A stretch of DNA of 64,000 nucleotides from Cyanophora paradoxa CCMP329 (Eukaryota; Plantae; Glaucophyta). Below the pieces are notes generated by a model. That model did not search any database. It had not been told where the DNA came from and was given only the letters and a program-made list of their open reading frames with translations. Positions within the stretch are counted from its first letter, which is position 1. Each line of letters begins with the position of its first letter. The position numbers were made by a program, and so were the translations under genes. Shown piece by piece: positions 4,489-64,000 of the stretch. The stretch is taken from contig QPMI01000233.1 in assembly GCA_004431415.1 (NCBI GenBank), positions 62,001 to 126,000 of the forward strand, written 5' to 3'.

Positions 4489-6580
4489 ATGGAGCGCCCT
4501 GCCACCGCGGTCGAGGGCCTCGCTGCGGGGACGACCAACGGCAACCCGTCGGATGGCAACCGCCCCACCAAGCGCCAGCGCGTGTGCGAGCAGCAGGATC
4601 TCGAGCCGATCGAGCAATCGCCGCTCTTGGCGTTGCCCGACGCGTTGTTCCAGCTGGTGTTCGAGGTGCTGGGCCCAGCCGCGGCGTGGCCTCTGCGCGC
4701 TGTCAGCAGGCGTTTTCGCTGGATCATCAGCGAGCAGCGGTGGAAGGCGCTCGAAATTTCCGTATCGCAGCGCAATGGCAAGGTACACTATCAGGACTCC
4801 TTGCTCCGCCTCGTCGTCGCGCGGGCTTTCAAGCTTGACCGGGGCTGCGCGCTCCGAATCACGATCAATGCGTGCGCGTCGCGCCTCTCTATTGTAATCG
4901 GCCACACACCCCGATCCCAGCGCTGAGCGGCGCCCCCCGGCCCGGCAGGCACGGCGCTCGGCGGATGGCTCGGCTCCCGGATTCGGCCTCGGCCGGCCCC
5001 GGCGACCGCGCCGGGGGGCTTCCGCGCATACCCGGCGTGACCCTGGAGTGCACGGGCTTGATAGAGACCGCGTTCGTGGTCCGCGTCTGCAACGAGGCGA
5101 GCGGCGGCCTCGGGTCCGTCTCGGTGTCCGGCCCCTGCATGTGCACCTTCCTCTCCGGAACTAGCGCCGTCTTCCTCACGTACGCGGCCCTCTTCCCGTG
5201 GTTCCCCAAAGAGCACAGCAGCGTCGACGGTGACGGCGGCGGCGACGGCGGCGGCGACGGCGACGGCGGCGCCGAAGCGGCGGGGGCGGGCGAGGCGCGG
5301 GCGCCGAACGCCCTGGAGTCCGTCGAGGTCCTGTCCGGGCACGAGCGGCCGCGCGACGGCTGCCCCCCGCCGCCCAGCCTCTGGCTTCAGATCCCCTCCT
5401 GGGAGGCCCTCGCCGAGCACTTCCGGTGGCCCGCCATCTTCCCCCACTTCCCCAGCCTTCGGCGCCTCCGCCTACCCCCCGGCTTCGTCATGAGACCCCA
5501 GTCCGCCCCCGCCTTCGCCGCCCAGTTCCCCCGCCTCCAGTCGGTGCGGAAGGACGCCTCTCGTCCTGCTGATCGCCTGATCGATATCGATCGCTGATCG
5601 CCCCCCCGCGCAGGCTTCTCTGACGTTCGCGCCCTGGGTTCCGGTGCTCTTGCGGGCCTTGCCGGCGCTGGAGGAACTCTCCCTCATGGCGGGCCCGCGG
5701 GGCCTGTCCATCTACGACGCCCTCGAGGTCTCCAAGACCCTCGAGGGCATCGCCGAGTGCTTCCGTACCCCCTCTGCCCTCAAGATCATCGACGTCCACA
5801 TCGGTGCGGTACCCCCCCCCCTTCCACGGGCCCCTCTCCGCCCCGGCGCCTCACCCCCCGTCCCAGCGCTCCACGACGAGCCGGAGGACAACGATCAGGT
5901 TCGAGTCCCCAGGGCGCCGCTTTCCGCTTCCTCTCGGGACTCGAGCTCTGAGCGTGCGCCCAGGTCGAGATGGAACTGGCCGGCCTTGCGAGCGTCCTGC
6001 GGGCGGCGGGGACCCGCCTGCGGCGCGTGGATTTGAAGCTTGGCGACTCGCGCCCGCTCTCGCCGGCCCTCGCCGCCACCCTGGGCGCCCTGGCGGACGT
6101 CCCGCAGCTCCTCTCCGTCCGACTCGTGTGCTGCGCCGAGTGGTGCGCCTGGGTCCGGCGCCGGGGCCCCCCTCAGCTCCGCCCCCTCCCCCCGCGGACC
6201 TGCTAAGCTTCGCTCCTGCTAGGGAGCGAGAGCTAAGGACCTTCAGCGCCCTGGCGCCCCTGGGCGAGCGCCTCAGCCTGGAGGTCACGGTCCCTTGGGA
6301 CGACGACGAGGACGAAGCCGACGTCGGGGGGGACGACGCGGGCGTCGATAGCGGCCTTGCGTGCTCCGTGTCCGTCGCCGAGGCGCGGCTGGGGCGGGCC
6401 CTGCGCACGCACGGGGCCCACCTCACCGTCCGGGCGGAGCCGGACGCCACCGAGGACGAGTGCGAGGGGCTGGGGTACGAGCCCTTCTCCGCCACCCCGT
6501 ACGGGTACGCGTACAGCGGAGCCTTCTTGGGCCCTGAGCCCCCGGGGGCGGGGACGGAGCTTGAGGCGCCCCCTGCGTAG
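4489..6580 (+). CDS. F-box protein with degenerate LRR-like C-terminal region (multi-exon)
   Basis: SPLLALPDALFQLVFEVLGPAAAWPLRAVSRRFRWII matches the F-box consensus. Later FPSLRRLRL, FPRLQS, LPALEELSL and RLRRVDL are LRR-like. Stop TAG at 6578-6580. Confidence 0.8.
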
Positions 6581-20900: not shown

Positions 20901-22908
20901 TCGTTCCGCCTGCGCCTCCGCCTCCGCTTCCGCCTCCGCCTCTGAGCTCGAGTTCCTTGCGATCGGACGCAGGGACGCCGGAGGAGGCCTCGTGGGGCTT
21001 CGTCCGCTCCGCCTCCTGCACCGACGACGGCGCCCTCGTCGCCACCGGCGACGGCGCCGACGTCAAGGTCCGCTCTGCAAGATTTCTAGGCTTACGCTGT
21101 ATATAAAAGCTTGAGTTTCATCTAAGAAACTTAATGGGCTCGTATTAATCTCGACTTGAGCTAAAGTATACATAGCAGCCAAAGCTTGAGCTGATTGAAA
21201 AAGAAGCTAACCTGGACTTGGGCAGGTCCTGGACGTGGCGACGGGCGCCGTGGCGTGGCGGGCGTCCCTCGCGTCCCTCGAGGGCGGGTGCGTCGGGCGG
21301 GGCGGGCGGGGCTCGAGCCGACATATATCGATCCGCCTGACTGACGAGGCCTTCGCCGACCGCGCAGCGGCTCCGAATCCGGCAGCGCGAGCGTGTCGGA
21401 CCTGGCGTTCGGGCCCGGCGGCGCCAGGGCGGCGCTGCTCGCCGTGGCCGCCCGGTCCCTCCTCGTGCGCCCTTTAATTTCTTACCGTAAAACACAATAT
21501 TAATGCGCTCAATATTAATGCGTTTTTGGACCCGGACCCCTAGTAGTTGGGGACGCATTAATATTATGCGCGCATTAATATTCTGTTTTACGGTATCCCG
21601 CGATCCAAATTACACCGAGCGCCGCTGACGCTGACGCTGACGCTGACGCCGACGCATTTTCCCCCCTTGTAGGTGCACCACCCGGGGGGCGCCCTCCTCG
21701 GCAAGGTGACGCCGGAGGGCGTCCACTTCTGCAACCAGGTCGCCTGGTCGCACGACGGCTCGGCGCTCTACGTCGCCGCCACGCACCACTCCAAAGAGCA
21801 CCGCGGCGGCACATTCTTCCACGTACGCATTTGCGCGCGAATCACATTTCCGCTTTTCCGACGCGTTGGGGGGCGCGCGCAGGTGGTCCGAGTCGCGCGG
21901 GACGGCCTCGAGCACGTCGCAAAGGTGCCTAGGCCTCCAACAACAAGAACAATATTTCCAGCATTTCCATGCGAGCTCAGTTTGTCGGTCGGTCGGGCAG
22001 GTCAACGTGCCGGGCTCCGACATGGTCTCGGCGGTGGCGGTGCACCAGCGCCCGGCCGGCGCTGCGGGCGGCGGCGGCGGCGCCACGCTCCTCGCGCTCG
22101 GCTGTATGGACGGCCTTGTCCGCCTCTTCGAGGGGCCAGGTCCGAATTCGGCTTCGAATTCGAAGGGGTCCGACGCCCAGTGGCGACTCGTGGGGGCCGC
22201 CTCGGTGCGGCGCCGGCCCTTCCTCGAACGAGGGCGAAGGAGGATTCTAACCGTTTCCCACGCTGGGCAGGGCCGCAAGGGCCGGGAGGTGGACAAGGGG
22301 TGGACGACGAGCCGCACGGAGGGGATCCACGGCCTCGCCTTCTCGCCCTGCGGGGGGCACCTCGCCCTCGCCGGTGGCCGCCAGGCGCGCGCCCTCAATT
22401 CAATATAGTTACATTATTTCCATTTAGCCTATTTGGACCAAAATACACTATATCATTAACAAACTCTTCGTTCTATATGTTATTAACATGCGCCCTCAAG
22501 CTCGAGCTTCTCCCTCTGAGCTATTCTAACCGGACACGATCGATCAGACGGGCCTCCTGGTCTTCCAAGTCGTGCAGGGCGCGGCGGACGGCGCCGGCGC
22601 CGGCGCCGGACCGCTGGTGGACGCGGCGTGGGCCCCAGGCGAAGCGGACCTCACCGGCGTCTGGTTCGTGCGAAAGGAGTACGCGGGCCGGGCGAAGGGC
22701 GCCGGCGCCGGCGCCGGGCGGGCCGTGCCCGGCTGGACCGTCATGTGCTCGGACCGCCTCGGGCAGGTGGGCGCGATCGATCCCGTCCCGTCCCGCGCGT
22801 CTCGCAAATATCGATATCGATGGCGAGCCCATGAGCTGAGCGGCGCCGACGCGGCAGGTGATGGCGTACCGCCTTCACGAGCCCGAGCCCGAGGCCCCCG
22901 GTGCCTAG
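9918..22908 (+). CDS. DUF4062-NACHT(STAND NTPase)-WD40/PQQ-like beta-propeller protein (TEP1/NWD-like architecture), dozens of small exons
   Basis: DUF4062 motifs: RVFLS|STFK|DFAGERDQL..VDL|RWG..CLEE|V..LLGDRFGWVP..SITSL|ELEYG. Walker A SAEP|GQGKTT at ~12035-12140, Walker B LLVIDD at ~12435-12450, and GRPLWLATACTELR at ~13440. WD-like repeats follow (FALSPDGRLLAS, LASLSGDGALIFWDL, IHGLAFSPCGGHLA). Last exon VMAYRLHEPEPEAPGA*. Confidence 0.85.
12987..13113. repeat. C-rich low-complexity tract (poly-C / CCCA-like) in an intron; G-quadruplex-forming potential on the minus strand
   Basis: About 125 nt made almost only of C runs interrupted by A. Confidence 0.85.
15430..15516. repeat. Intronic 10-11 bp minisatellite (ACCGAAATCYG-like, ~8 copies)
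   Basis: ccgaaatccca ccgaaatcca ccgaaatctca ccgaaatccga ccgaaatccga ccgaaatcgga ccggaatctga ccgaaatctga fills the intron ~15428-15526. Confidence 0.9.
16915..17040. repeat. Intronic ~16-bp degenerate repeats (GAGCTAAGAGACCTTA-like)
   Basis: GCTAAGAGACC occurs four times here with further degenerate units; a related copy is at ~16205. Confidence 0.8.
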
Positions 22909-24309
22909 ACCTCCATCTAGAATGCAGCACTTAGCCCCGGAATCGTTTGTTTTCTAGGCAGTACTTGCTTCTTTGAACCAAGCCCTTGAAGTCGAGCTTG
23001 GCCTCAATCGCAGCGTCAAATGGGGTCTAAGCTTGCGATTGCTTGGGTCTAAAACCTCAATCACGATATTAAGCTTGCGATTGCTCTCCGCTTCAATATT
23101 CTCCCCGAACGTTCTCCAGATCGTGAACGTTCCCTTGATCTAGATCGCGAACGTTCTATTCCCTTTTAGCTATTCTCCGCAAACGTTCTCCTCGATCTAG
23201 ATCTAAATCTCCTCTCCTCGAGCCCGCTTTCGAATTCTCTAGATCGCCCGCTTTCGAATTCTCTAGATCGACATCTATGTCGATATATATCCCTTTCGAA
23301 TACGATTTTTCCTCCTCTCCGGATCCTAATTTTTTAATTAAGCTTCCTCTCTTCCTTTCGAAATTCCGATTCCCCCTCTCTCCCTCCTTTCGACTCTGGC
23401 CCTCTCGAGCTCGATCCCGTCTCCTCTCGATATCGATCCTCTTACATTTCCTCTCTTTCCTCTCGATCCCCTTCTCCCACCCATGCACTGCAGCTGCACG
23501 CCATGCACCCTATAGCTATAGAAAAATCCGAGACTTGAGAACAAAGCGAGGGTGTACCCCCGAAACGCTCTCACAGCTGCGGCCCGCGCGGTCGGCAAGC
23601 CGACGTCGACGTGATCGGCCCGGGGCGGGCGCTGCGCTCGAGTTCGCAGGAGTAGCATCTCGATCTGAGAGTCCAAGGCAGCTCTGAGCGCCTGGTCGGT
23701 AATATAAACGTTCGCGTCCGGGCTGCCCGGGTGCCCCTTGTTCGAGGCAGCAGCGTCTGAAACAACTGGTGAGGCTTCTAAGTGCGTGGTTTCTTGTTGA
23801 AAACGGCCGCCCGCGCCGCCCGCGGCCCGTACGCGTGACCGACCCGCACGCGCCGCCTTATGATCATGATCATCTCCAGATCTAGAGCTCGAGACCGCGC
23901 CTTCGTCGGGCCACAAGGCGGTGCCGGAGCATCGTCAACCATCCGAGAATGTCTCCTCTGTTCAAGTACCATCCTTTCCCCGGCCCTGCAGGCTTTTCGA
24001 TTATCGATTGCGTCGACGTCGTCGCGGCGCCGGCGGCGCAGATCTGGAATTCGAATGCATATGGTCGCCAGCGGCGCGTTTACGTCAATCCCTGCGTCTG
24101 CAGTGCGGCCGGTACGTCCTCTCATGATTAGCGCATCGAGAGCGCGCGCCTCGAGCTCCGAGGCTCATGATCAACGGCGCGCGCGCGCGCATGGCGTGCC
24201 CAGGCCTGCGGAGTCGATGCAGCGGCCTGTGGAGCGCTGGGTCCCGGCGCACTAGCAGTTTCTGCCGCGCGCAACTCACGAGCCTCTGCGGCGCCATCGC
24301 ACGGCGGCA

Positions 24310-26743
24310 ATGGGAAACTCGCAGCTCGAGCCTTCTTCGGCTCGCGCCCGTTGGGCGGACATGCGCGCTTGTTCGCTCATGATCGCAGATCGAATCCGCA
24401 GACGAATACGCGTACGTTCTCTCCCCGATCGAGCCTTCGAAATTCGAGTTCGCTGGCGCGCGGGGCCCGGGGCTGACCCCCACGCGCGCGCGGACGCGCA
24501 GCGCTATCCCCGCGGGTCGACGTCATCGAATCGCATCTGCAAAAACCGATAGATCTGGAGGTACTGGTTACGCAAGACGTTGTCGTGCTCGGCGACTGCA
24601 GACCGGTTCCGACGGGGATCACGACCATTCGAGGTGCTTTAGATCTCTCATATGCGCGATCACATGCGTGTTCTGCGCGCGTGCACGTGGCATCCCCGCG
24701 CGCTCTCACCAAACGGCACGCATACGCACGGCAGGACCGGCGTACGTGGCGGCGCTTATGACAGTTAACGGGAAGTGGCGAGAGGCGCTGCTTCGCACGG
24801 CAATGCTCGCCCTCCGCACCGAGGGCCTGTCGGCAGCAGAGCTCGATCTGTACTTCTACTGGAGGCAGCCGCAGCGGCAGTACTTCTCGCTCGTGGGCGA
24901 CCGCACGCGCATACCGACCATCGACGACGGGTTCTTTTACGTCGCGAGGAGGGGCGGCGCCTGGCCGCGAAAGGAGGACTCGCCTTTTCTGCGGGAGCAA
25001 CTGCAGGCGGCGACGGCCGCGGCGGCCGTGGCTTCGCCCTCTGCCGACATCGTCACAGCTGTAAACGCTGCCGCCGCCGCAGCGGCGCAGGCGGTCCTTG
25101 CGGCGAGCAGTATGCAGCCGATCGCGAATTCGGAGCAGCGCAAGACGGAACGGCAAGAGGTGGACGCCGATCGCGAGCTCGAGGTCGATCTCGATTCTAC
25201 AGCCGCCGCTTACGAGGAACCAGGCCAGCTGCAGGTGCTGGCCACTGTTCTTCATGAGCGTCGATCGCGAAATCCATGGGCCAATCGCAGTTTCGCGCAG
25301 CCAACTGTTGCCGCGGACATCGAACTGCAGCCGGGGGACAGCCTCGCGGCCGCTGTGGCGCAGGCCGCTCCGGGGCAGACGATCCGCCTCGCTCCCGGCC
25401 AGTGCGCCGCCCCGGCCCTTCGCGCCTAGGGCCTGCTCGTCAACCCTAGGCCTAGGCCTGGATCGCAAGCTCGAGCTTCAAGCCGACCCGCCATCGCCCT
25501 CGCAGATACAAAGTCGAGGAGACCGTGGTGCTTGACAAGGACGTGCACATTGTCGGGCCGCGCGAGCTCGAGGCCGTTCTGGAGGCGTCGGGAGAACAGC
25601 GCACCGTGCTGATGTGCAAGGGGCCCGCGGCCCCCAGCATCCGGGGCATAACGATCCAGCACGCGGGGATATCCAGATACGGGAGCGACCGCGCCCTGTG
25701 GATCACAGACGGAAGCCGCGCTGTCGTGAAGGGCTGCGTGCTGTCTGTCGCGCCCGCGGGCCTTTGCGGCATCCACATTTCCGGCGAAACGACGGCCCCT
25801 ACGCTGCGCGGTGGGCGCCCTCGCCTCGCCCTCGCCCTCGCCCTCCGCGTGGCAAGCTAATTAAATATTCGCGTGCCAGGGAACGCGGTGCACAGCTGCG
25901 GCAGAATCGGGATTTTCTTCGGCGATTCGGCGGCGGGGGTCGCGGAGGGCAACTTCGTCTACGGGAACAAGCTTAAAGGCGCGGGCATCCTGATCAGGGA
26001 TGGCGCGGACCCCGTCGTGCGAGGCAACAGCGTGTACGACGGCAATGGCGCCGGCATCATGGTGCGCGGGGGCGCGAAGGGCACCATCGACGGCAACGAC
26101 GTCCACGGCAACAAGGGCACGGGCATCGTGATCGAGGATTCCAAGGGCACAGTCGTGAGGGGCAACACGGTCCACGGCAACGGCGATGTTGGCATCCTCG
26201 TCTTCAAAAAGCCCGAGGGGCCGGAGGGGCAGAGCACAGTGGAGGGAAACGAAGTGTACGGCAATGCGGACGCTGGAATCGTCATCAGCGACGGCGGGGA
26301 CGCCATCGTGAAGGAAAACCGGTGCGCGTTCGCTTCATATAATTCCCTATCTATTCGCATCCTTTTCTATCCATATCTCTTGGTCTAGATCTAATTATAA
26401 ATTACAAAATATAAATAATTTTGTTTTGGTGAATTACCGGCCACAGCCTCTAGTCTACTCCAGCACTGTGGGGGCGTATACAGCAAAATAAGCTTAGATA
26501 TATGTATATATATAATCATGACTTTCGAAAATTATTAAACAGACGTGCATTCTTCTAAGTAGCTAATTACAACGTTAAATGCCTGATGCATCTGCCCGTT
26601 CTCGCAGGATCCACAGCCAGAGGAAGGGGATCTGGGTGCACTCGGGCGGCAAGGCTACCATCACGGGCAACGTGCACGCGCCGCATCGGCTCTCCCCCGG
26701 GCCCGAGGTGGCCGTCACCATCGAGGACTGCCGGGACTTGTGA
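24310..26743 (+). CDS. Right-handed parallel beta-helix (PbH1/NosD/FBXO11-like repeat) protein, copy 1, apparently intact; start codon uncertain
   Basis: LAAAVAQAAPGQTIRLAPG..YKVEETVVLDKDVHIVG is followed by GNxVxGNxxxGI repeats (GNFVYGNKLKGAGI, GNSVYDGNGAGI, GNDVHGNKGTGI, GNTVHGNGDVGI, GNEVYGNADAGI). The last exon ends EDCRDL* at 26741-26743. Confidence 0.8.
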
Positions 26744-26754
26744 CTCCTGTGAAG

Positions 26755-26930
26755 TCATGCTCGGACCGCCTCGGGCAGGTGGGCCGATCCCGCCGGGTCT
26801 CGCAAATATCGATATTGATGGAGAGCCACGGCCCGCGCTGCGAGCTCGAGCTGAGCGGCGCCGACGCGGCAGGTGATGGCGTACCGCCTTCACGAGCCCG
26901 AGCCCGAGCCTCGAGGCCCCCGGAGCCTCC
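26755..26930 (+). pseudogene. Orphan duplicate of the last 1.5 exons of the NACHT-WD40 gene
   Basis: CSDRLGQ|intron|VMAYRLHEPEPE repeats 22745-22900, without upstream exons and without the TAG. Confidence 0.85.
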
Positions 26931-27988
26931 ATCTAGAATGCAGTGCTTAGCTCGGCCCCGGAATCGTTTGTTTTCTAGACAGTATACGTACTTGGATCAG
27001 CGGCTTCTTTGAACCAATTTTTGGCCTCAATCGTAACGTCAATGGGGTCTCTAGCTCCTCCCGATATTACGCGCTAGCTTGCAATTGTTCTCCGCTCCTT
27101 CTCCCCGAACGTTCTCCTCGATCTAGATTTCCTCTCCTCGAGCCCGCTTTTCGAAAGGAGGATTCTCTATATATCCCTTTCGAATTTTTAATTCTTCTCC
27201 TCTCTTAAGCTTCCTCTAGATCTAGATCTCTTCCTTCAAGGCTTTCGAAATTCCGATCCTCCCTCTCGCCCTCTTCCTCTCTAGATCTGCCCCTCTCGAT
27301 ATTGATCGAGAGGGCTCGGAGAGATCCCCTTAAATTCTCCCACCCACTGCGCACGCCGAGCTCCTAACTATGAGAAAGTCGAGACTTGAGAACAAAATTG
27401 AAGCGAGAATAAATTAATGTACCCCCAAAACGTTCTTCAGCCCGCGGCCGGCGCCGGCTCTCTGCCAGCCGGCCGGCGCCCCTCTCGATACAATCGAGAA
27501 GCGCGGAGAGCTTCTATAGCTATAGCTAGGCTCTCTGCCGGCGCCCCATATCGATCGAGAGGCGCGGCCGGAGATCCCCTTTTCAATATGAAATTTCCTC
27601 TCCGAGGCTCTGGATCTACATCTTTCCTCTGGATCCCCCTTCTCGATGCTTCCATCCTGTCCTCTAGCTGTGGGCTTTTCGATTATCGATAGCTTCGTGC
27701 ACGTGGCGCAGATCTAGAATGCATATGGTCATCAGCGACGCGTTTGCGTCGATCCTTGCGTCCGCAGTGCAGCCGGTACGTCCTCTCAGCGCATACAGAG
27801 CACGCGCGCGCCTCATATATGCATGATCAACGGCGCGCGCGCGCGCATGTCGTGCACGTGCGCAGGCCTGCGGAGTTGATGCAGCGGCTCATGGAGCGCT
27901 GGCCATGAGTGCCTGCGCACTCGCAGTTTCCGCCACGCGCAACTCACGAGCCTCTGCGACGTCGCCGACACCGCACGGCGGCGATGGC

Positions 27989-30531
27989 AATGGCAAATTC
28001 AGAGCTCGAGCCTTCTTCGGCTCGCGCCCGCTGCAGCTGGGCGCTCATGCACGCTCGCTCGCTCATGATCGCAGATCGTTTTCGCAGACGAATACGCGTA
28101 CGTTCTCTTTCTTATCGAGCCTTCGAAATTCGAATTAGCTGGCGCGCGGCCGCGAAGGCTGACTCCCGCGCGCGGACGCGCAGCGCTATCCCCGCGGGTC
28201 ATCGAATCGCATCTGCAAAAACCGATAGATCTGGAGGTACTGGTTACGCAAGACGTTGTCGTGCTCGGCGACTGCAGACCGGTTCCGACGGGGATCACGA
28301 CCATTCGAGGTGCTTTAGATCTCTCATATGCGCGATCACATGCGTGTTCTGCGCGCGTGCACGTGGCATCCCCGCGCGCTCTCACCAAACGGCACGCATA
28401 CGCACGGCAGGACCGGCGTACGTGGCGGCGCTTATGACAGTTAACGGGAAGTGGCGAGAGGCGCTGCTTCGCACGGCAATGCTCGCCCTCCGCACCGAGG
28501 GCCTGTCGGCAGCAGAGCTCGATCTGTACTTCTACTGGAGGCAGCCGCAGCGGCAGTACTTCTCGCTCGTGGGCGACCGCACGCGCATACCGACCATCGA
28601 CGACGGGTTCTTTTACGTCGCGAGGAGGGGCGGCGCCTGGCCGCGAAAGGAGGACTCGCCTTTTCTGCGGGAGCAACTGCAGGCGGCGACGGCCGCGGCG
28701 GCCGCGGCTTCCCCCTCTGCCGACATCGATATCGTCACAGCCGTAAACGTTGCCGCCGCCGCGGCGCAGGCGGTCGTTGCGGCGAGCAGCATGCAGCCGA
28801 ATTCGGAGCAGCGCAAGACGGATCCGGAACGGCAAGAGGTGGACGCCGATCGCGAGCTCGAGGTCGATCTCGATTCTGCAGCTGCCGCTTACGAGCAACC
28901 AGCTGCAGGCCAGCTGCAGGTGCTGGCCACTGTTCTTCATGAGCGTCGATCGCGAAATCCATGGGCCAATCGCAGTTTCGCGCAGCCAACTGTTGCCGCG
29001 GACATCGAACTGCAGCCGGGGGACAGCCTCGCGGCCGCTGTGGCGCAGGCCGCTCCGGGGCAGACGATCCGCCTCGCTCCCGGCCAGTGCGCCGCCCCGG
29101 CCCTTCGCGCCTAGGGCCTGCTCGTCAACCCTAGGCCTAGGCCTGGATCGCGAGCTCGAGCTTCAAGCCGACCCGCCATCGCCCTCGCAGATACAAAGTC
29201 GAGGAGACCGTGGTGCTTGACAAGGACGTGCACATTGTCGGGCCGCGCGAGCTCGAGGCCGTTCTGGAGGCGTCGGGAGAACAGCGCACCGTGCTGATGA
29301 GCAAGGGGCCCGCGGCCCCCAGCATCCGGGGCATAACGATCCAGCACGCGGGGATATCCAGATACGGGAGCGACCGCGCCCTGTGGATCACAGACGGAAG
29401 CCGCGCTGTCGTGAAGGGCTGCGTGCTCTCTGTCGCGCCCGCGGGCCTTTGCGGCATCCACATTTCCGGCGAAACGACGGCCCCTACGCTGCGCGGTGGG
29501 CGCCCTCGCCTCGCCCTCGCCCTCGCCCTCCGCGTGGCAAGCTAATTAAATATTCGCGTGCCAGGGAACGCGGTGCACAGCTGCGGCAGAATCGGGATTT
29601 TCTTCGGCGATTCGGCGGCGGGGGTCGCGGAGGGCAACTTCGTCTACGGGAACAAGCTTAAAGGCGCGGGCATCCTGATCAGGGATGGCGCGGACCCCGT
29701 CGTGCGAGGCAACAGCGTGTACGACGGCAATGGCGCCGGCATCATGGTGCGCGGGGGCGCGAAGGGCACCATCGACGGCAACGACGTCCACGGCAACAAG
29801 GGCACGGGCATCGTGATCGAGGATTCCAAGGGCACAGTCGTGAGGGGCAACACGGTCCACCAACGGCGATGCTGGCATCCTCGTCTCCAAGGAGCCCCAG
29901 GGGCACAAGGGGCAGAGCACATGTACAGTGGAGGGGAACGAAGTCTACGGCAATGCGGACGCTGGAATCGTCATCAGCGACGGAGGGGACGCCGTCGTGA
30001 AGGGAAACCGGTGCTCATTCGAAATTCGCTTCGTCTAATTCCCTATCTATCCGGATCCCTTTCTATCCAGGCCATATATATATCCCTTGGTCTTATTATA
30101 ATTATATTTATTTTGCTTTTTTGTCTTTATGCCCCCTGGGCAGCCCCCGCAGTGCTGGTGTCTAGATCTAGAGACTGTGGCCGGTAATTCACCAAAAAAA
30201 ATTTAATTATAAATTACAGAATAAGTCTAAATTTAGAACTAGCTATATAGATAGAAGTCTGACTTTCAATAAGCCGGCGCCAATGTGCATTCTTTTGACT
30301 AGCTAACGTAATCATGATCATAACGTTAGCATGCATATGCCTGATGCATCTGCCCGTTCTCGCAGGATCCACAGCCAGAAGAAAGGGATCTGGGTGCACT
30401 CGGGCGGCAAGGCTGCTATCACAGACAACCTGCACGCGCGGGACCCGACCGGCTCCGCCCCCACCATCACCATCGAGGACTGCCCGGACTTCCGCGCCGA
30501 TCGCGATCGCGATCGAAACACCGTCCTGTGA
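27989..30531 (+). pseudogene. Beta-helix protein copy 2, frameshifted
   Basis: Paralogous to 24310-26743, but with a 2-nt deletion at ~29860 (GTCCAC--CAACGGC versus GTCCACGGCAACGGC) that shifts the frame of the last repeats. A sequencing error is not excluded. Confidence 0.7.
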
Positions 30532-34596: not shown

Positions 34597-35007
34597 AACT
34601 AGGTCTAGGTATCCGAATCGGACTCCATCTCATCTTAAAGCTAGCGCTTCCGCTAGGCTTGAATCGAATCGAATCGTTTGCGAATGTTCTTCAGTCTGTC
34701 TAATCCCCGGCTTGGCCCGTTCGAATCGCCAGCTCGCAGCCCTCTAGACTAGACCTCGAGCTTCAAGAGCTTCTCCTGCCCGCGGCCGCGGAGGCCTCCG
34801 CACGAACTCTCAAGCAGTTCTCGTGTGAGTTGTTCGAATTCGTGCGTACATCTAGGCTTGACACCATTGAACTCTCAAAGATATACGCACGAACAACTCA
34901 CACGAGAACTGAACTAAGTACACCCGCAGAGCTAGCGAGCAAGCTTAAGCATGTGTGTAGCTATAGCAGCTGCAGCTGCAGGGCGCAGGCGGAAAGAGCT
35001 TCGCGGC

Positions 35008-43782: not shown

Positions 43783-44400
43783 CCCGCCCCCCGGCCCCAC
43801 CCTCCCCTTTCATTATTTTCCCGAACCGGCCGCGCGCGCGAGAGCGGTTCTTCTGGCGGCGTAGGCGCGGCCCTCGGCCAGTCCGCAGCCCTCGCGCGCC
43901 CTGTTTCCGTCCGGCGCGGCGGGCCCCCCCCCCCCGCTGGACTTCAAGTTAGATGTACTCTGCATCGTAGGTCTGTATGTAGCGGGTTCGCAAGTGGGTC
44001 ATCGCGGGTGAATATACGGCTCTTTTAACTAGCAGACCGCGCCCGGCCCTGTGCAAGTGCGGCAAGTGCGGCCGGGCGCCGGCGCGCGAGGCAGCCTGGC
44101 AGGCGGGGTGGTGAGGCGGGTGGCGGCGCACCAGGCGCCGGCGGGCGGGCAGGCGAGCCCGGCGGCCTAGCTATAGGCCTCGCCGACGAATTCGAAGCTG
44201 ATCATCGGATCATGATTTATGAGATGAGACGTCGACCCTGCAGCTGATCATGAGGAACTCGGAAGATCCATATTAGCTTCGGAGTCAAAAGAAGTTCGAT
44301 TCTGTTCGAACGTACCCGGGAAATTTTAAAGCTTCACGCGATTCAACCCTCCTCCATTCCAAGTTCCAACTTTGAACCCGCGCGGTCCCGCGAGAACTTT

Positions 44401-44558
44401 GAAAACACCGTGCTAAGAGGCTGCCATTGCAGAATTTGTAGCCTGCCAATTTGTGCCAAATTGCCATGCCTGCCATTCGAATTCAAAATCAAATTCGAAT
44501 TCTCGAGTACCGGTACCATTTTCTTCCGGTACCGGAAGCCTCTTAGCACTGTGTTTTC
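44401..44558. mobile_element. MITE-like 158-bp element / inverted repeat (22-bp arms, 1 mismatch)
   Basis: GAAAACACCGTGCTAAGAGGCT (44401-44422) and AGCCTCTTAGCACTGTGTTTTC (44537-44558) are reverse complements. No clear TSD. Confidence 0.45.
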
Positions 44559-44608
44559 GCGGGGTATCGAATCGTTGCGGGTAGGAATCGAACCGGCAAC
44601 CCTACCCT

Positions 44609-52500: not shown

Positions 52501-55500
52501 GCGCCCTCGGCCAGCTGCCACTCGACGTCGCCGGCGGGCGGGCGGCCGACGAAGGAAACGTTGGCGAGCGACTCGACGGTCCGGTCCTCCAGGCCCGGCA
52601 GGATCAGGGCCGAGGCGCGCGTGAGGTTCACCAGCGCGGCCAGCGCCGTCGACGCTGCGGCCGGCGCCGCCGGGTCGGCCACGAGGGAAAGGCGGAAGAG
52701 GATGGACCCGCAGCGGATCTCGTCGACGCGGACGCGGGCGGACGATGAGGCGGGAAGGCCGCTCCGCTCGAGGAAGCGGTAAACGAGGGCGTCGAGGGCG
52801 CGCGAGACGTCGTCGGCGCGCGTGGCGCGCAGGTACGCCTCGCACTCGGCGCGCGTGGCGGGGACGGAGAGGACGAGGGTGATCGTGGCGGCCGCGGCCG
52901 CGGGCGAGGGCGAGGGCGTGGGCGAGGGCAAGGACGGGGGCGCGGGCGTGGAGGATGGGAACGGAGTCGAGTTGGGAGGTAGAGCTGGAGGGGACGGAGA
53001 TGGCGTGGTAGGGGGCGTAGCCGACGGCGTCGCGGTCGACGCGGTGCGCGGGGGGAAGGAGAGGGTCTGGGCCCGGCGCTCGCCATCGGCAGGGTACGAG
53101 CAGTTGCCCGATACGAGCGGGATGGCGCCTGAGGAGCGGGCACGAGTGGCGCCCCCGCATCAGACGGCTCGGATCAATTTCACAGGATGCGAGCAACTGC
53201 GCTGACGCACCGACAAGGCGGACGAAGCGCGACGGCGTCCCGGCTCCAGACGAAATCATCCTGACCGGAAATGTTAACAGAAATCCGGCGAGAAACCAAT
53301 GAATTCTCGCATCCACGCACGTTGTGCAGGTGCCGCAGTCGGAGTCGTGCGCAGCATCGTCGAGCCCCACGCTGGCGTCGAGCGAGTACGGCGGGGCGGC
53401 AGCGATTTCGACGGCGCCTCCGACGGCCACCTCGAGCAGAGAGGCCGGGCCGCCCTCCTCGACGGCGAGGAGCGCCCCGTGGCAGCTGCCAAGGACGAGG
53501 CGCCGATTCTCGGTGGCGGCGATCTGCGCCCTTGGAAATCGTGCCACCCGCCGGAACCCCAGGGTAGGCGCCGCGAGATCAACCTCGCTGTCGGATCACG
53601 AAGATGTCAGAATTTGTGCGGGAATTCGCGCGTTTTTATGCGTTGCGCACTACACGTCGACGGTGCTCGTGGAGGTAGGCGGGTCGGCGTTCGCGGAGTA
53701 CCAGCGGCTCCCAACCCGCGCGCACGCTGCGCTGGAGAGCACCGGGGCGCCGCCCTGGCCGTCGGGGACCACCGTCGACCAGGCGCGGTCCTCGCTCGAG
53801 AACCTGGCGCGAAAGTCGAGTGAGCTTTCGGTCCATGTAGTGTATTATTGCAAAGTTCTCAGATCTAGACTTCTTTGTAGATTCTTTACGGATTTGTGAT
53901 TTATGCTATCATTGCGCACGCGATCAGGTCGCTCTTGCCTCCGACGCCGATTGTCCCCGCCATGACCCACACGCGGCCATCGTACACGGTGACACCTGCA
54001 GTCCATTTAAGGCCGGGGCATGTTTTGTGAAAGATTAAATTAAAGCAGCTCACAGTGTCCGGTTCTCGGATTCGGAAGCGCGGGAAGCTCGACCCAGGCG
54101 TCGAAATCGGTGGAAAACGCCCAGAACGACGACGAGAGCGCCGCGCCCCCGTCCTTGTAGCCGCCTGCAGAGCCCTCAGCTCGTGCTCGCGTGTGAAACA
54201 CCGGATCTGCAACCCGGTGCAGCGCACCAGCGCAGTAGACCGCGCGCTCGCGGTCCCACGTGCACCGCGTGCCGCGGCCCAGGATCGGTTGCTGCACGAT
54301 TGCTTGTGTCCATGCCCCCGAGTCTGTCGACATCACTCAGAAAGAGAACATGGAAGGGATACGTTTGATTCATGATGTCTTACCGACATCAAGGACATAC
54401 ACATCGCCGAGAAGATCGGAGCCGGCTTGCACAACGCCCGTGCCGTCCAGAGCGAACGAGCCTCCCAGCACTGTGAACATCAGGCGGCCCGCAGGGCTCC
54501 GGAAGAGGACGCCGCTGCCGACGAACTGCCGCCGGACGCTTGCCGGAGCTGGAACGTCTTGGAGGGTCAGATGATACACGCCTGCGCGGAATGCGTGAGA
54601 CATTCGCTCGCAAACTGCAACCGACTTCTCGAATAACGTTATATTAAAAACGAACCTGGAACGACAAGCGGACCCAAGGAGGTTGTCTGCGACACGGCCA
54701 GCGACGAGCGCGCCGCTACCCCGCAGCTCAGAACGTAGCTGCCAGCCCGCGATATTTGGACCGCCACGGAGACGTTGACGTTAACCGTTGCAGGCCCGGC
54801 GGCCACCTGAGGCAACTCTGTGCTGACTCTGTACGGGCCGCCGGATCCGGTGCAGCTCGTGTCGACGGCGACAACGCTCTGTCCAGTCCAGATACCCACT
54901 TCGAGTTCCACGAGAGACGCGTTGAAAGCACGTTGCACGTAAACGGCCGGGGCCCATGGCGAGGCTGCGCATAGTATTTAAATACTGGAAAAAATCGAGG
55001 AGCAATCGAAATCCTGCAGAACGCACCGACAGGGACGGTAACGTTTGATCGAACGGGCGGAGAAAACAGATCGATAGACGATCGGACACGAGTGGAGCAG
55101 GCCAGCGTGTACGAAGCATTGTATGACGATAAGACAGAGATGGAAAGGGTCTTCGAAAAGACAAAATCTCCGGAGACGCTCGCATCAAGCGCGTAGGGGC
55201 CGCCAAAGCCGTCACAGGTGGTGATGACAGAAACTATGCTCTGCCCGGCACCGAAGACTGCGTTAGCGCTTATGAGAGTGCTGTTCTGAGCCACAAAGTT
55301 TGCCGATGGCGCCGCGGGAACAGCTTGAAAGAAATGTAAGCATCAGTTCAGTGCGTGGGATGGACGAAACATAAGTATCGGCGCACCAGCAGGGACCCAC
55401 ACATATCCAGACGGCACAGCCAGCTCCGACGGAAGGCCCGTCGACCCCCTCACCAGCGCCGCGCACGCCAGCGTGTAGTTCCCGCTGTACTTGGGCGCCA

Positions 55501-58500
55501 CCGTCAGTGCCACGCTCGCCTCCGCCGCCGCCCCGTCGCTCGCGTTGACGGAAGCAAATGCAGCGTACGGGCCGCCGTGGCCCGAGCAGTTCAGCTCCGC
55601 TCTTGCGACGCTCTGGCCCGGCGTGAAGTGCACTGCGGCTGTTACGCGTGTCGCGTTGTTCACGACCACCACGACATCCGACGGGGCCCAGGGCGTCGCT
55701 GCACGAGCGCAGCTGATAAGAAACGTGGCATCCTGTCTGCTCCTGGCAGCGCATGCGAACCTGCAGGCACATCAACCGCAAACGACGACGTTTCCGACGC
55801 CAGGCCTGTTGATGCTCGCGCGAGGGTCGAGCACGCCAGTCTGTAGCCTCCCGTGTACGACAGCGCAATGGCGAGCTCCACTGCCGTCCCGGAAGCGCCG
55901 GCGTCGGTGACCGCGACGCTCCTTGCGTACGGGCCGCTGAAGCCCTCGCACGCCAGCTCCAGCGCCGCTACGCTCTGGCCGGCGGTGAACTTGAAGAGAA
56001 ACGCGACACGCGTCGCGTTTGTGGCCGCGGCCGACTCGACGGACGGCCGCCAAGGAGACGCTGTGTGAAAGCGCCGCAGAGTCAGCGAACGATGGCAAGC
56101 TCGCGGTTAACCTTGAGCAGACGTCGCAAACTCAACCGCTACTCGGAGGGCGCTCACCGGGAGGAACGGTGGCGATCTCTGCGAACGCGACAGATGCCGA
56201 CGGCAGTCCCGCGGACGCCCGGACCAGTGCTGTGCACGCCAGCGTGTAGTTCCCGAAGTACTTCGGCGCCACCGTGAGCGACACGTTGGCTACGGCCACC
56301 GCTCCATCGTTCGCGTTGACTAAAGCGGATGCATAGTACGGGCCGCCATGGCCCGAGCAGTTCAGCTCCGCCCTCGCGACGCTCTGGCCCGGCGTGAACC
56401 GCAGCACGGCCGTCACGCGGGTCGCGTTCTCCACAGACACAGCGACGCCCGACGGGGCCGAAGGCGCCGCTGCGCGCGCGCAGAGCGCCGTCGGTTGATT
56501 CGCAACGTAATGCATCCTGTGAACGGGGCGGCGGGGCAGCGCGTGCGAACCTGCAGGCACGTCGACTGCGAATGCCGACGCTTCCGACGCCAGGCCTGTT
56601 GACGCTCGCGCGAGGGCTGAGCACGCCAGCCTGTAGCCTCCCGTGTACGATGGCGCGACGGCGAGCTCTACAGCCGTCCCGGAAGCGCCAGTGTCGGAGA
56701 CCGGTACAGGCTTTCCGTACGGTCCGCCGAAGCCCTCGCACGCCAGCTCCAGCGCCGCTACACTCTGGCCCGCTGTGAAGTTCAGGAGAACTGAAATGCG
56801 TGTCGCGTTTGTTGCCGCGGCCGACTTGATGAATGGCCGCCAAGGAGACGCTGCGCGAAGGTGCGACAGAGTCAGCGGATTCCGGCGAGCTCACGACCAC
56901 CCCTCAAAAAAAGTCGCTCACCGGGAGGAATCGTGGCGATGTCTGAATACGTGACAGCTGCCGACTGTAGTCCCGTGGACGCCCTCACGAGCGTTGTGCA
57001 CGTGAGGCTGTAGTTTCCGCTGTACTTCGGCTCCACCGTCAGCGACACGTTGGCCCCCGCCACCGCCCCATCGCTGGCGTTGACGGCGGCAGCCACCGAG
57101 TAGAGCCGTCCGTCGCCGGAGCAGTTCACCTCCGCCCATGCGACGCTCTGGCCTGGCGTAAAGCGCAGGACGGCCGTTGCGCGAGTCGCGTTCTCCACAG
57201 ACACCGCAAGCTCCAACGGGTCCCAGGGCGAAGCTGCCGAACACATCAAAGTCAGCGGTCGTGGGCAGCAAGCCGACATGAGTCTCCAGCTGCAAGCTTC
57301 GGCCCTGGCCTTGCGAACTATTTTGCGTCAAATCGTTCCAATCCTACTATCCCTCCCGTCTAGCTAAATAGAGACACTCATTCTCGCCCTTATGATCGGT
57401 CCCAACGCTAACGAACAACGCACCAGCCGGAACCCACACTGAGCTCGACGGCACAGCCAGCGCCGACGGAAGGCCCGTCGACCCCCTCACCAGCGCCGTG
57501 CACGCCAGCGTGTAGTTCCCGCTGTACTTCGACGCCACCGTCAGTGCCACGCTCGCCTCCGCCGCCGCCCCGTCGCTCCCGTTGACGAAAGCGAATGCGG
57601 CGTACGGGCCGCCATGGCCCGAGCAGTTCAGCTCCGCCCTCGCGACGCTCTGCCCCGGCGTGAACCGCAGCAAGGCCGTCACGCGGGTCGCGTTCTCCAC
57701 AAACACAGCGACGCTCGACGGGCCCGAAGGCGCCGCTGCGCGCGCGCAGAGCGCCGTCGGTTGATTCGCAACGTAATGCATCCTGTAAACGGGGCGGCGG
57801 GGCAGCGCGTGCGAACCTGCGGGCACGTCGACTGCGAACGCCGACGCTTCCGACGCCAGGCCTGTTGACGCTCGCGCGAGGGCTGAGCACGCCAGCCTGT
57901 AGCCTCCCGTGTACAATGGCGCGACGGCGAGCTCCACTGACGTCCCGGAAGCGCCAGTGTCGGAGACCGGTACAGGCTTTTCGTACGGTCCGCCGAAGCC
58001 CTCGCACGCCAGCTCCAGCGCCGCTACGCTCTGGCCCGCTGTGAAGTTCAGGAGGACAGAAATGCGTGTCGCGTTTGTTGCCGCGGCCGACTTGATGAAT
58101 GGCCGCCAAGGAGACGCTGCGCGAAGGTGCGACAGAGTCAGCGGATTCTGGCGAGCTCACGACCACCGGTACCCCTCAAAAGAAGTCGCTCACCGGGAGG
58201 AATCGTGGCGATATCTGAATACGTGACAGCTGCCGACTGTAGTCCCGTGGACGCCCTCACGAGCGCTGTGCACGTGAGGCTGTAGTTTCCGCTGTACTTC
58301 GGCTCCACCGTCAGCGACACGTTGGCCCCCGCCACCGCCCCATCGCTGGCGTTGACGGCGGCAGCCACCGAGTAGAGCCGTCCGTCGCCGGAGCAGTTCA
58401 CCTCCGCCCATGCGACGCTCTGGCCTGGCGTAAAGCGCAGGACGGCCGTTGCGCGAGTCGCGTTCTCCACAGACACCGCAAGCTCCAACGGGTCCCAGGG

Positions 58501-61500
58501 CGAAGCTGCCGAACACATCAAAGTCAGCGGCCGTGGGCAGCAAGCCGACATGAGTCTCCAGCTGCAAGCTTCGGCCCTGGCCTTGCGAACTATTTTGCGT
58601 CAAATCGTTCCAATCCTACTATCCCTCCCGTCTAGCTAAATAGAGACACTCATTCTCGCCCTTATGATCGGTCCCAACGCTAACGAACAACGCACCAGCC
58701 GGAACCCACACTGAGCTCGACGGCACAGCCAGCGCCGACGGAAGGCCCGTCGACCCCCTCACCAGCGCCGTGCACGCCAGCGTGTAGTTCCCGCTGTACT
58801 TCGGCGCCACCGTCAGTGCCACGCTCGCCTCCGCCGCCGCCCCGTCGCTCCCGTTGACGAAAGCGAATGCAGCGTACGGGCCGCCATGGCCCGAGCAGTT
58901 CAGTTCCACCCTCGCGACGCTCTGGCCCGGCGTGAACCGCAGCACGGCCGTCACGCGGGTCGCGTTCTCCACAAACACAGCGACGCCCGACGGGGCCGAA
59001 GGCGCCGCTGCGCGCGCGCAGAGCGCCGTCGGTTGATTCGCAACGTAATGCATCCTGTGAACGGGGCGGCGGGGCAGCGCGTGCGAACCTGCGGGCACGT
59101 CGACTGCGAACGCCGACGCTTCCGACGCCAGGCCTGTTGACGCTCGCGCGAGGGCCGAGCACGCCAGCCTGTAGCCTCCCGTGTACGACGGCGCGACGGC
59201 GAGCTCCACCTCCGTCCCGGAAGCGCCAGTGTCGGAGACCGGTACAGGCTTTCCGTACGGTCCGCCGAAGCCCTCGCACGCCAGCTCCAGCGCCGCTACA
59301 CTCTGGCCCGCTGTGAAGTTCAGGAGAACTGAAATGCGTGTCGCGTTTGTTGCCGCGGCCGACTTGATGAATGGCCGCCAAGGAGACGCTGCGCGAAGGT
59401 GCGACAGAGTCAGCGGATTCCGGCGAGCTCACGACCACCCCTCAAAAGAAGTCGCTCACCGGGAGGAATCGTGGCGATATCTGAATACGTGACAGCTGCC
59501 GACTGTAGTCCCGTGGACGCCCTCACGAGCGCTGTGCACGTGAGGCTGTAGTTTCCGCTGTACTTCGGCTCCACCGTCAGCGACACGTTGGCCCCCGCCA
59601 CCGCCCCATCGCTGGCGTTGACGGCGGCAGCCACCGAGTAGAGCCGTCCGTCGCCGGAGCAGTTCACCTCCGCCCATGCGACGCTCTGGCCTGGCGTAAA
59701 GCGCAGGACGGCCGTTGCGCGAGTCGCGTTCTCCACAGACACCGCAAGCTCCAACGGGTCCCAGGGCGAAGCTGCCGAACACATCGAAGTCAGCGGTCGT
59801 GGGCAGCAAGCCGACATGAGTCTCCAGCTGCAAGCTTCGGCCCTGGCCTTGCGAACTATTTTGCGTCAAATCATTCCAATCCTACTATCCCTCCCGTCTA
59901 GCTAAATAGAGACACTCATTCTCGCCCTTATGATCGGTCCCAACGCTAACGAACAACGCACCAGCCGGAACCCACACTGAGCTCGACGGCACAGCCAGCG
60001 CCGACGGAAGGCCCGTCGACCCCCTCACCAGCGCCGTGCACGCCAGCGTGTAGTTCCCGCTGTACTTCGGCGCCACCGTCAGTGCCACGCTCGCCTCCGC
60101 CGCCGCCCCGTCGCTCCCGTTGACGAAAGCGAATGCGGCGTACGGGCCGCCATGGCCCGAGCAGTTCAGCTCCGCCCTCGCGACGCTCTGCCCCGGCGTG
60201 AACCGCAGCAAGGCCGTCACGCGGGTCGCGTTCTCCACAGACACAGCGACGCTCGACGGGGCCGAAGGCGCCGCTGCGCGCGCAGAGCGCCGTCGGTTGA
60301 TTCGCAACGCAATGCATCCTGTGAACGGGGCGGCGGGGCAGCGCGTGCGAACCTGCGGGCACGTCGACTGCGAACGCCGACGCTTCCGACGCCAGGCCCG
60401 TTGACGCTCGCGCGAGGGCCGAGCACGCCAGCCTGTAGCCTCCCGTGTACAATGGCGCGACGGCGAGCTCCACTGACGTCCCGGAAGCGCCAGTGTCGGA
60501 GACCGGTACAGGCTTTCCGTACGGTCCGCTGAAGCCCTCGCACGCCAGCTCCAGCGCCGCTACGCTCTGGCCCGCTGTGAAGTTCAGGAGGACAGAAATG
60601 CGTGTCGCGTTTGTTGCCGCGGCCGACTTGATGAATGGCCGCCAAGGAGACGCTGCGCGAAGGTGCGACAGAGTCAGCGGATTCTGGCGAGCTCACGACC
60701 ACCGGTACCCCTCAAAAGAAGTCGCTCACCGGGAGGAATCGTGGCGATATCTGAATACGTGACAGCTGCCGACTGTAGTCCCGTGGACGCCCTCACGAGC
60801 GCTGTGCACGTGAGGCTGTAGTTTCCGCTGTACTTCGGCTCCACCGTCAGCGACACGTTGGCCCCCGCCACCGCCCCATAGCTGGCGTTGACGGCGGCAG
60901 CCACCGAGTAGAGCCGTCCGTCGCCGGAGCAGTTCACCTCCGCCCATGCGACGCTCTGGCCTGGCGTAAAGCGCAGGACGGCCGTTGCGCGAGTCGCGTT
61001 CTCCACAGACACCGCAAGCTCCAACGGGTCCCAGGGCGAAGCTGCCGAACACATCGAAGTCAGCGGTCGTGGGCAGCAAGCCGACATGAGTCTCCAGCTG
61101 CAAGCTTCGGCCCTGGCCTTGCGAACTATTTTGCGTCAAATCGTTCCAATCCTACTATCCCTCCCGTCTAGCTAAATAGAGACACTCATTCTCGCCCTTA
61201 TGATCGGTCCCAACGCTAACGAACAACGCACCAGCCGGAACCCACACTGAGCTCGACGGCACAGCCAGCGCCGACGGAAGGCCCGTCGACCCCCTCACCA
61301 GCGCCGTGCACGCCAGCGTGTAGTTCCCGCTGTACTTCGGCGCCACCGTCAGTGCCACGCTCGCCTCCGCCGCCGCCCCGTCGCTCGCGTTGACGGAAGC
61401 GAATGCGGCGTACGGGCCGCCATGGCCTGAGCAGTTCAGCTCCGCCCTCGCGACGCTCTGCCCCGGCGTGAACCGCAGCAAGGCCGTCACGCGGGTCGCG

Positions 61501-64000
61501 TTCTCCACAGACACAGCGACGCCCGACGGGGCCGAAGGCGCCGCTGCGCGCGCGCATAGCGCCGTCGGTTGATTCGCAACGTAATGCATCCTGTGAACGG
61601 GGCGGCGGGGCAGCGCGTGCGAACCTGCGGGCACGTCGACTGCGAACGCCGACGCTTCCGACGCCAGGCCTATTGACGCTCGCGCGAGGGCCGAGCACGC
61701 CAGCCTGTAGCCTCCCGTGTACAATGGCGCGACGGCGAGCTCCACCGCCGTCCCGGAAGCGCCAGTGTCGGAGACCGGTACAGGCTTTCCGTACGGTCCG
61801 CCGAAGCCCTCGCACGCCAGCTCCAGCGCCGCTACGCTCTGGCCCGCTGTGAAGTTCAGGAGAACTGAAATGCGTGTCGCGTTTGTTGCCGCGGCCGACT
61901 TGATGAATGGCCGCCAAGGAGACGCTGCGCGAAGGTGCGACAGAGTCAGCGGATTCTGGCGAGCTCACGACCACCCCTCGAAAGAAGTCGCTCACCGGGA
62001 GGAATCGTGGCGATGTCGGAATACGTGACAGCTGCCGACTGTAGTCCCGTGGACGCCCTCACGAGCGCTGTGCACGTGAGGCTGTAGTTTCCGCTGTACT
62101 TCGGCTCCACCGTCAGCGACACGTTGGCCCCCGCCACCGCCCCATCGCTGGCGTTGACGGCGGCAGCCACCGAGTAGAGCCGTCCGTTGCCGGAGCAGTT
62201 CACCTCCGCCCATGCGACGCTCTGGCCTGGCGTAAAGCGCAGGACGGCCGTTGCGCGAGTTGCGTTCTCCACAGACACCGCAAGCTCCAACGGGTCCCAG
62301 GGCGAAGCTGCCGAACACATCGAAGTCAGCGGTCGTGGGCAGCAAGCCGACATGAGTCTCCAGCTGCAAGCTTCGGCCCTGGCCTTGCGAACTATTTTGC
62401 GTCAAATCGTTCCAATCCTACTATCCCTCCCGTCTAGCTAAATAGAGACACTCATTCTCGCCCTTATGATCGGTCCCAACGCTAACGAACAACGCACCAG
62501 CCGGAACCCACACTGAGCTCGACGGCACAGCCAGCGCCGACGGAAGGCCCGTCGACCCCCTCACCAGCGCCGTGCACGCCAGCGTGTAGTTCCCGCTGTA
62601 CTTCGGCGCCACCGTCAGTGCCACGCTCGCCTCCGCCGCCGCCCCGTCGCTCGCGTTGACGGAAGCGAATGCGGCGTACGGGCCGCCATGGCCCGAGCAG
62701 TTCAGCTCCGCCCTCGCGACGCTCTGCCCCGGCGTGAACCGCAGCAAGGCCGTCACGCGGGTCGCGTTCTCCACAGACACAGCGACGCTCGACGGGGCCG
62801 AAGGCGCCGCTGCGCGCGCGCATAGCGCCGTCAGTCGATTCGCAACGTAACGCACACTATGAACGGGGCGGCGGGGCAGCGAGTGCGAACCTGCGGGCAC
62901 GTCGACTGCGAACGCCGACGCTTCCGACGCCAGGCCTGTTGACGCTCGCGCGAGGGCCGAGCACGCCAGCCTGTAGCCTCCCGTGTACAATGGCGCGACG
63001 GCGAGCTCCACCGACGTCCCGGAAGCGCCAGTGTCGGAGACCGGTACAGGCTTTTCGTACGGTCCGCCGAAGCCCTCGCACGCCAGCTCCAGCGCCGCTA
63101 CGCTCTGGCCCGCTGTCAAGTTCAGGAGGACAGAAATGCGTGTCGCGTTTGTTGCCGCGGCCGACTTGATGAATGGCCGCCAAGGAGACGCTGCGCGAAG
63201 GTGCGACAGAGTCAGCGGATTCCGGCGAGCTCACGACCACCCCTCGAAAGAAGTCGCTCACCGGGAGGAATCGTGGCGATGTCGGAATACGTGACAGCTG
63301 CCGACTGTAGTCCCGTGGACGCCCTCACGAGCGCTGTGCACGTGAGGCTGTAGTTTCCGCTGTACTTCGGCTCCACCGTCAGCGACACGTTGGCCCCCGC
63401 CACCGCCCCATCGCTGGCGTTGACGGCGGCAGCCACCGAGTAGAGCCGTCCATCGCCGGAGCAGTTCACCTCCGCCCATGCGACGCTCTGGCCTGGCATA
63501 AAACGCAGGACGGCCGTTGCGCGAGTCGCGTTCTCCACAGACACCGCAAGCTGTAACGGGCCCCAGGGCGAAGCTGCCGAACACATCGAAGTCAGCGGTC
63601 GTGGGCAGCAAACTGACATGGGTCTCCGGCTGCGCATGCAAGCTTCGGCCCTGGCCTTGCGAACTATTTTGCGTCAAATCGTTCCAATCCTACTATCCCG
63701 TCTAGCTAAATAGAGACACTCATGCTCGCCCTTATGATCGGTCCCAACGCTAACGAACAACGCACCAGCCGGAACCCACACTGAGCTCGACGGCACAGCC
63801 AGCGCCGACGGAAGGCCCGTCGACCCCCTCACCAGCGCCGTGCACGCCAGCGTGTAGTTCCCGTTGTACTTCGGCGCCACCGTCAGTGCCACGCTCGCCT
63901 CCGCCGCCGCCCCGTCGCTCGCGTTGACGGAAGCGAATGCAGAGTGCGGGCCGCCATGGCCCGAGCAGTTCAGTTCCGCCCTCGCGACGCTCTGGCCCGG
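49510..64000 (-). CDS. Giant single-pass receptor-like protein kinase (5' end beyond window): beta-sandwich repeats - Kelch-like propeller - Pro/Ser stalk - SEA-like domain - TM - RD Ser/Thr (TKL-like) kinase
   Basis: Kinase exons: LLGEGAFGR|VY, AVKEV, CRHPNVLPV, LDFALQIASG|LAYLHHELPQPVAHRDL|KPQNILL, LRVCDFG|ISR..RGTL|LYMPPE|..KTD|VWAFGIVLTEMLTG, SCLEKKPHKRPSF; stop TGA at 49510-49512. TM segment AAGVAALLAAVLLFVYV-RRKRR at ~52275-52345. Kelch-like motifs: GDVYVLD, DAWVELPALPNPRTGH, VYDGRVWVMAG. Confidence 0.9.
55385..64000 (-). repeat. Tandem array of ~1266-1272-bp units, each 3 exons + 3 introns encoding three ~100-105-aa FN3/Ig-like domains
   Basis: The same intronic marker occurs at 57347, 58619, 59885, 61155, 62421 and 63693. 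There are six near-identical triplets (the last partial) and more divergent domains at 54660-56470. Confidence 0.95.

Follow-up and report, generated by a model that had tools for sequence, protein, structure and literature searches.

Uniform 6- and 8-bp palindromic insertions in Cyanophora paradoxa as probable excision footprints of DNA transposons with a 3-bp target duplication

Two adjacent copies of a β-helix gene in the glaucophyte Cyanophora paradoxa differ repeatedly by small indels of one form, with a trinucleotide X in one copy and X-rc(X)-X, the trinucleotide followed by its reverse complement and by itself again, in the other, and the locus raises the question of which process writes so regular a word. 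A first-pass annotation of this DNA had proposed a rule-governed mutational system, produced either by hairpin-based excision footprints of a transposon with a 3-bp target-site duplication (TSD) or by a dedicated repair or double template-switch pathway. The window, which is the whole stretch of 64,000 nt that was analyzed, has a G+C content of 67%, many introns, and no CpG depletion; its source is C. paradoxa, whose published genome it matches in GC content and short introns (PMC6704402). One exon of the duplicated gene shares 98% identity with tig00001001_g6208, a Cyanophora paradoxa entry of EukProt, and the other copy is g6207; both encode right-handed β-helix proteins, of whose family the C. 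paradoxa genome has at least 15 more members. Copy A (about 22746 to 26739, plus strand) comprises the 3′ end of a WD40-like gene and g6207, and copy B (about 26758 to 30491, plus strand) comprises g6208, which has a 2-bp frameshift near 29860.

All 13 of the X-rc(X)-X 9-mers cited in the first-pass annotation are present in the window, each built on a different trinucleotide, and long alleles do occur in both copies, as it had claimed. The long allele is found in copy A on GAA (24047 to 24055; short at 27717), GTC (24516 to 24524; short at 28198), and CGA (25119 to 25127; coding, adding two residues), and in copy B on GTA (26982 to 26990; short at 22961), GTG (27852 to 27860; short at 24196), CTG (28031 to 28039; the short allele at 24351 reads TTG, not CTG), ATC, GGA, and CAG (28725 to 28733, 28820 to 28828, and 28900 to 28908, all three inside published model g6208), and ACA (29919 to 29927). 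The GTC site had been presented as coding, but it lies 5′ of the start codon of the published gene models, which leaves its coding status without support. Three further cited cases, the GAG form in copy B (26842 to 26850, compared with 22833), whose left flank aligns poorly, and the TCA and ATG 9-mers at 30312 and 30331 in a copy B intron (30312 to 30339), are confirmed as 9-mers but are weaker as indels, their flanks being poorly aligned. Events that had escaped the first reading include two decayed forms with one mismatch each, on TCA in copy A (24122 to 24130) and on TGG in copy B (27900 to 27908), and a double event on TCT in copy B (27215 to 27229), where five alternating units add 12 bp to the single TCT found at 23348 in copy A. 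For brevity, we refer to all of these as scars.

The duplication core, in which 23985 to 26330 was aligned with 27668 to 30020, contains 86 substitutions and 21 indels in 2291 columns. Six base pairs is the length of 13 of the 21 indels; nine of these 13 are exact X-rc(X)-X (P = 3e-6 against a generous 12.5% background that itself includes true scars), two are the one-mismatch forms at 24122 and 27900, and two are unexplained. Scars therefore arise in the core at about one per 8 to 10 substitutions, a ratio that is blurred because near-identical patches (24530 to 25020 and 25240 to 26170, compared with copy B), interleaved with diverged ones, suggest gene conversion between copies A and B.

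The assembly was made from long reads with short-read correction (PMC6704402), and long alleles could in principle have been introduced during assembly or polishing. Contigs of three independent short-read runs, from 2012 (X1), 2019 (X12), and 2024 (X2), carry both long and short alleles and show zero differences over 24000 to 24514, 24999 to 25175, 26879 to 28196, and 28675 to 28854, which refutes an artefact at the bridged sites; among the pieces listed, the bridging leaves out 24516/28198 and 28900. Decayed scars also contain later substitutions, and we consider the chance of an artefact negligible. The three runs probably represent one strain, so this comparison excludes artefact and is silent on population variation.

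A two-copy alignment has no power to polarize the events, and long alleles might be ancestral, with the short ones arising by slippage deletion between 3-bp direct repeats; some reversion by slippage is plausible. Third copies, which the first-pass annotation had named as a means of polarizing the events, give the direction. In a tandem array of six units at the end of the window, the long state is in the minority, with a scar on ACC in 2/6 units (58165 to 58173 and 60701 to 60709) and one on TGC in 1/6 (63631 to 63639). In a conserved region of the β-helix protein, copies A and B both have E-L-E and K-L-K where the 15 paralogues compared are two residues shorter: the DNA under E-L-E, in place of a single E, is an exact scar on GAG (25564 to 25572, plus strand; 29249 in copy B), and that under K-L-K is a one-mismatch scar on AAG (25969 to 25977, plus strand; 29654 in copy B), both older events common to the two copies. 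Two additions in another paralogue, C-A-C and V-R-V, could each have come from a scar, as 5.6% of random two-residue insertions could, and the β-helix gene has three other two-residue insertions relative to paralogues with no recognizable scar in the DNA. Because most units of the array have the short allele, the long alleles are additions relative to 15 paralogues, and the 14-fold excess described below needs a process that creates the 9-mers, the events are insertions relative to an empty ancestral site, and deletion by slippage is a very improbable account of them.

The abundance of the form was measured against Markov backgrounds, a comparison that the first-pass annotation had proposed. 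In 51 kb of non-redundant window sequence, 345 X-rc(X)-X 9-mers are found where 55 to 65 are expected (orders 1 to 3), and for complex 9-mers, from which GC-only and ATA/TAT triplets are omitted, the count is 167 versus 11.7 expected, a 14-fold excess. The excess is confined to the 3-bp unit: complex 4-bp and 5-bp analogues number 3 and 0 versus about 1.5 and 0 expected, and those 4- and 5-bp analogues that do occur are microsatellites and were rejected as scars. An apparently enriched class in which the middle unit is complemented and not reversed was also rejected, as it consists mostly of symmetric triplets and decayed scars. The 2-bp analogue with C/G spacers is found at 14 sites in the window compared with 4 to 7 expected, an excess that is at most weak and that could come from an element with a 2-bp TSD. 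Scar density is ~4.0/kb in non-coding or unassigned DNA versus 0.6/kb in a rough coding set, and exact scars make up 13 to 21% of the sequence in five of the six non-coding stretches examined and 6% in the other; overall, roughly one-seventh of non-coding DNA consists of scars. Arrays of five or more units account for 5 of about 148, which by a rough estimate fits independent hits at the local density, and self-priming re-hits are therefore not needed.

There is a second form, X-C-rc(X)-G-X, which adds 8 bp and occurs 27 times in the window versus 1.0 expected (27-fold); of the 16 spacer pairs tested, C/G alone is enriched. It too is polymorphic between the copies, being present on CTT in copy B (27234 to 27244; a single CTT at 23355 in copy A) and on CTC in copy A (24156 to 24166), where it is nested on a 6-bp scar and is missing from copy B. 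Neighboring bases do not predict the spacers, the next base being G in 7/27, the previous base C in 12/27, and both in 3/27; the spacers are therefore not copies of the host site and point to an origin outside it, in DNA with C...G ends. Each form is strand-symmetric, and mixed 7-bp forms are scarce (4 and 10 versus about 3 expected), which indicates that both ends are processed alike. Target triplets are variable, with 25 of the 27 complex triplet classes used; triplet use by the 6-bp form is uneven (P = 0.002). The 6-bp form is preferentially flanked by C at −1 or G at +1 (119/272 versus 30%, P = 1.5e-6), and this flank bias is absent from the 8-bp form (19/54, a small sample).

We propose that the scars are excision footprints of very active cut-and-paste DNA transposons that have a 3-bp TSD and C...G ends and that close the flanking DNA as hairpins, a reading to which we assign a probability of about 0.75. 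The element would enter and duplicate a triplet X of nearly any sequence, mildly favoring sites with C before X and G behind it. As the geometry implies, excision would then close each flank as a hairpin: a nick at the exact border would give X-rc(X) and lead to the 6-bp form, and a nick one base inside the C-ended element would carry its terminal C into the loop, giving X-C-rc(X) and the 8-bp form. In our model, the hairpins are then opened by a host nuclease at a point a few bases beyond the tip; as the same triplet terminates each flank, the overhangs have rc(X) in common, and end joining guided by this microhomology would funnel many opening positions into one product. A toy hairpin model, which is our own simplification and ignores precise excision (an outcome that would be invisible), returns the canonical scar in 76 to 100% of cases when openings of 2 to 5 nt are allowed on both sides. 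The uniformity would thus follow from the short TSD, and the nick exactly 3 nt from the tip that the first-pass annotation had postulated is unneeded. The scars accumulate as insertions, chiefly where the DNA is non-coding; those of the 6-bp form, which are in frame, persist in exons. They could restore an exon that had been disrupted, an outcome that would favor their survival in genes. The two forms probably represent two elements or two concerted modes of cleavage, because 7-bp forms are rare and flank bias differs between the forms. By a rough reckoning, one scar per 8 to 10 substitutions is a high rate, yet one that families with hundreds of active copies might reach.

The hairpin-footprint branch of the first-pass annotation is thus supported by the insertion polarity, the 3-bp unit, the C/G-spacer 8-bp form, and the palindromic flank preference; the fit it had suggested to hAT and Transib/RAG elements is not, as their TSDs are 8 bp and, in the canonical case, 5 bp, and the unit here is 3 bp. 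For Ac/Ds, MULE, Transib, and RAG, it is established that the flanks are closed as hairpins, which enzymes of the host open and join, with P-nucleotides and often with guidance by microhomology (PMC5873905, PMC5499845). Like the Cyanophora scars, footprints of Ac/Ds, a hAT element, have palindromic junction additions between two target copies, and microhomology biases them toward few products (PMC5873905, PMC1978519). They differ in the 8-bp TSD of hAT elements, in a palindrome centered on a flank base, and in their heterogeneity, whereas the Cyanophora scars have a 3-bp unit, element-like C and G spacers, and two dominant fixed products; membership in hAT was rejected because the unit is not an 8-bp TSD and the spacers are not derived from the flanks. 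RAG1/Transib and the P-nucleotides of V(D)J recombination offer a border-exact flank hairpin that yields the 6-bp geometry (PMC5499845, PMC4411706), but Transib elements typically duplicate 5 bp. A canonical Transib/RAG source was rejected: complex 5-bp triplications are absent, and a 5-bp target of the form C-X-G would force C/G flanks, which are seen in 3/27 cases. PIF/Harbinger was rejected as well, its TAA/TTA target being present at only 3/136 sites. The CACTA/EnSpm (CMC) superfamily, with a variable 3-bp TSD (PMC4423477, PMC3193017) and CACT(A/G) ends (PMC4423477), fits the 3-bp unit and would fit the C...G ends deduced from the spacers of the 8-bp form, but CACTA excision in plants leaves several variant footprints (PMC6379663), and we found no published description of a uniform X-rc(X)-X footprint for CACTA. 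CACTA/CMC elements or an orphan RAG1-like element are the candidate families. To our knowledge, a hairpin mechanism for CACTA/CMC is inferred rather than shown.

Several observations count against the footprint reading. Excision footprints in the literature mostly vary from event to event and include deletions and filler (PMC4423477, PMC5873905), and the genome paper describes repeats as little expanded (PMC6704402). The donor element is absent from the window: scans for terminal inverted repeats (TIRs) with a 3-bp TSD gave no element above chance, and the window has no filled site, no CACT(A/G) TIR pair, no transposase-like open reading frame among those selected for scanning, and no Rfam match. 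This absence, together with a uniformity and a rate above those reported for transposon footprints, would suit a nuclease acting directly, whether a domesticated RAG1-like or CMC-like transposase that no longer integrates or a dedicated break-repair pathway, which would make 3-nt staggers and hairpins by itself. Such a runaway nuclease or host pathway would write the 6- and 8-bp words with no stable insertion, as programmed spacer DNA and two-residue protein insertions. It would need a 3-bp duplication before hairpinning, and it offers no source for the invariant C and G spacers of the 8-bp form. Of the nucleases that might be considered, Top2 and Spo11 make staggers of 4 nt and 2 nt, which misfit the 3-bp unit, and protelomerases, being sequence-specific, misfit as well. 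We consider direct action of a nuclease unlikely, in either guise.

A double polymerase template switch during replication, or a Pol-theta-like templated insertion, would make the same word as a micro inverted triplication, and X-rc(X)-X is formally an outcome of the four-point template switch, with no transposon required. Short-range template switches resemble the scars in placing a short reverse-complement copy beside its source, but they are variable in length, with microhomology at the switch points, and the order needed here, with the return point before the first switch, is unobserved in human data (PMC5453318). In the Cyanophora scars, the copied length is fixed at 3, and the short alleles have microhomology at the two switch points in only 5/14 and 2/14 cases, and at both in 1/14; the constant C/G spacers are not templatable. 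This branch of the first-pass annotation is disfavored, and for the 8-bp form it is largely refuted. We rate it somewhat below direct nuclease action and far below excision footprints of 3-bp-TSD transposons.

The insertion class is real and unusually uniform and abundant, and it appears to work like the hairpin footprints of hAT and RAG, as a variant of these and not as a new mutational system. As a rule, transposon footprints are uncommon and ragged, and they are difficult to recognize. Here, the small indels are dominated by two fixed footprints, which add pairs of residues to conserved protein domains, so that the old idea of excision footprints as a source of protein diversity becomes countable genome-wide. 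The scars would also record past transpositions as a fossil map that shows target preference and relative age, and would serve as an in vivo readout of the strand-cleavage chemistry of a 3-bp-TSD transposase. Indel models, alignments, and studies of intron evolution in this key glaucophyte would need to include them. The genome paper nowhere mentions palindromes or indels (PMC6704402). Our literature search, which covered few subscription papers and few of the older papers on plant genetics, yielded no account of this insertion class, and single examples may exist.

The short TIR elements that the window does contain have a TA or 2-bp duplication, or none. A 109-bp miniature element (MITE) with CCGTA ends and a TA duplication (Tc1/mariner-type) lies at 21485 to 21593 in an intron of the WD40-like gene; a 97-bp element at 34815 to 34911 has perfect 22-bp inverted ends (CAG...CTG) and is flanked by AAG and AAC, and thus has no exact target duplication; and a 177-bp MITE-like element at 44387 to 44563 has CCC...GGG ends, TIRs of about 28 bp, and an apparent 2-bp duplication (GT). 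We take the last to resemble CCC-ended EnSpm-type elements.

Other features of the duplication and the array were also noted. The 2-bp deletion at 29860 shifts the frame of the last β-helix exon of copy B, which may be decaying; the published model g6208 splices around the deletion. Right after the g6207 stop codon, at 26740 to 27050, the duplication repeats the 3′ end of the WD40-like gene that lies upstream. The end of a very high-copy repeat with an A-rich tail lies in the same intron of copies A and B (26410 to 26483 and 30143 to 30211) in opposite orientation, at a contig depth roughly 500x that of its surroundings; it is probably the end of a retroposon within a micro-inversion. A high-copy repeat probe had no match in viral or metagenome contigs. 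Short similar sequences around CGCCTCTC/ATTGTA/ATCG are found at 4882 and 27480 to 27564, with loose contig ends at 27458 and 27513, and may represent a small dispersed repeat, which within the duplication is present in copy B only. The tandem array (55382 to 64000, minus strand) is composed of ~1270-bp units with three related exons each and belongs to a large receptor-kinase-like gene, and its substitutions form a mosaic among the units.
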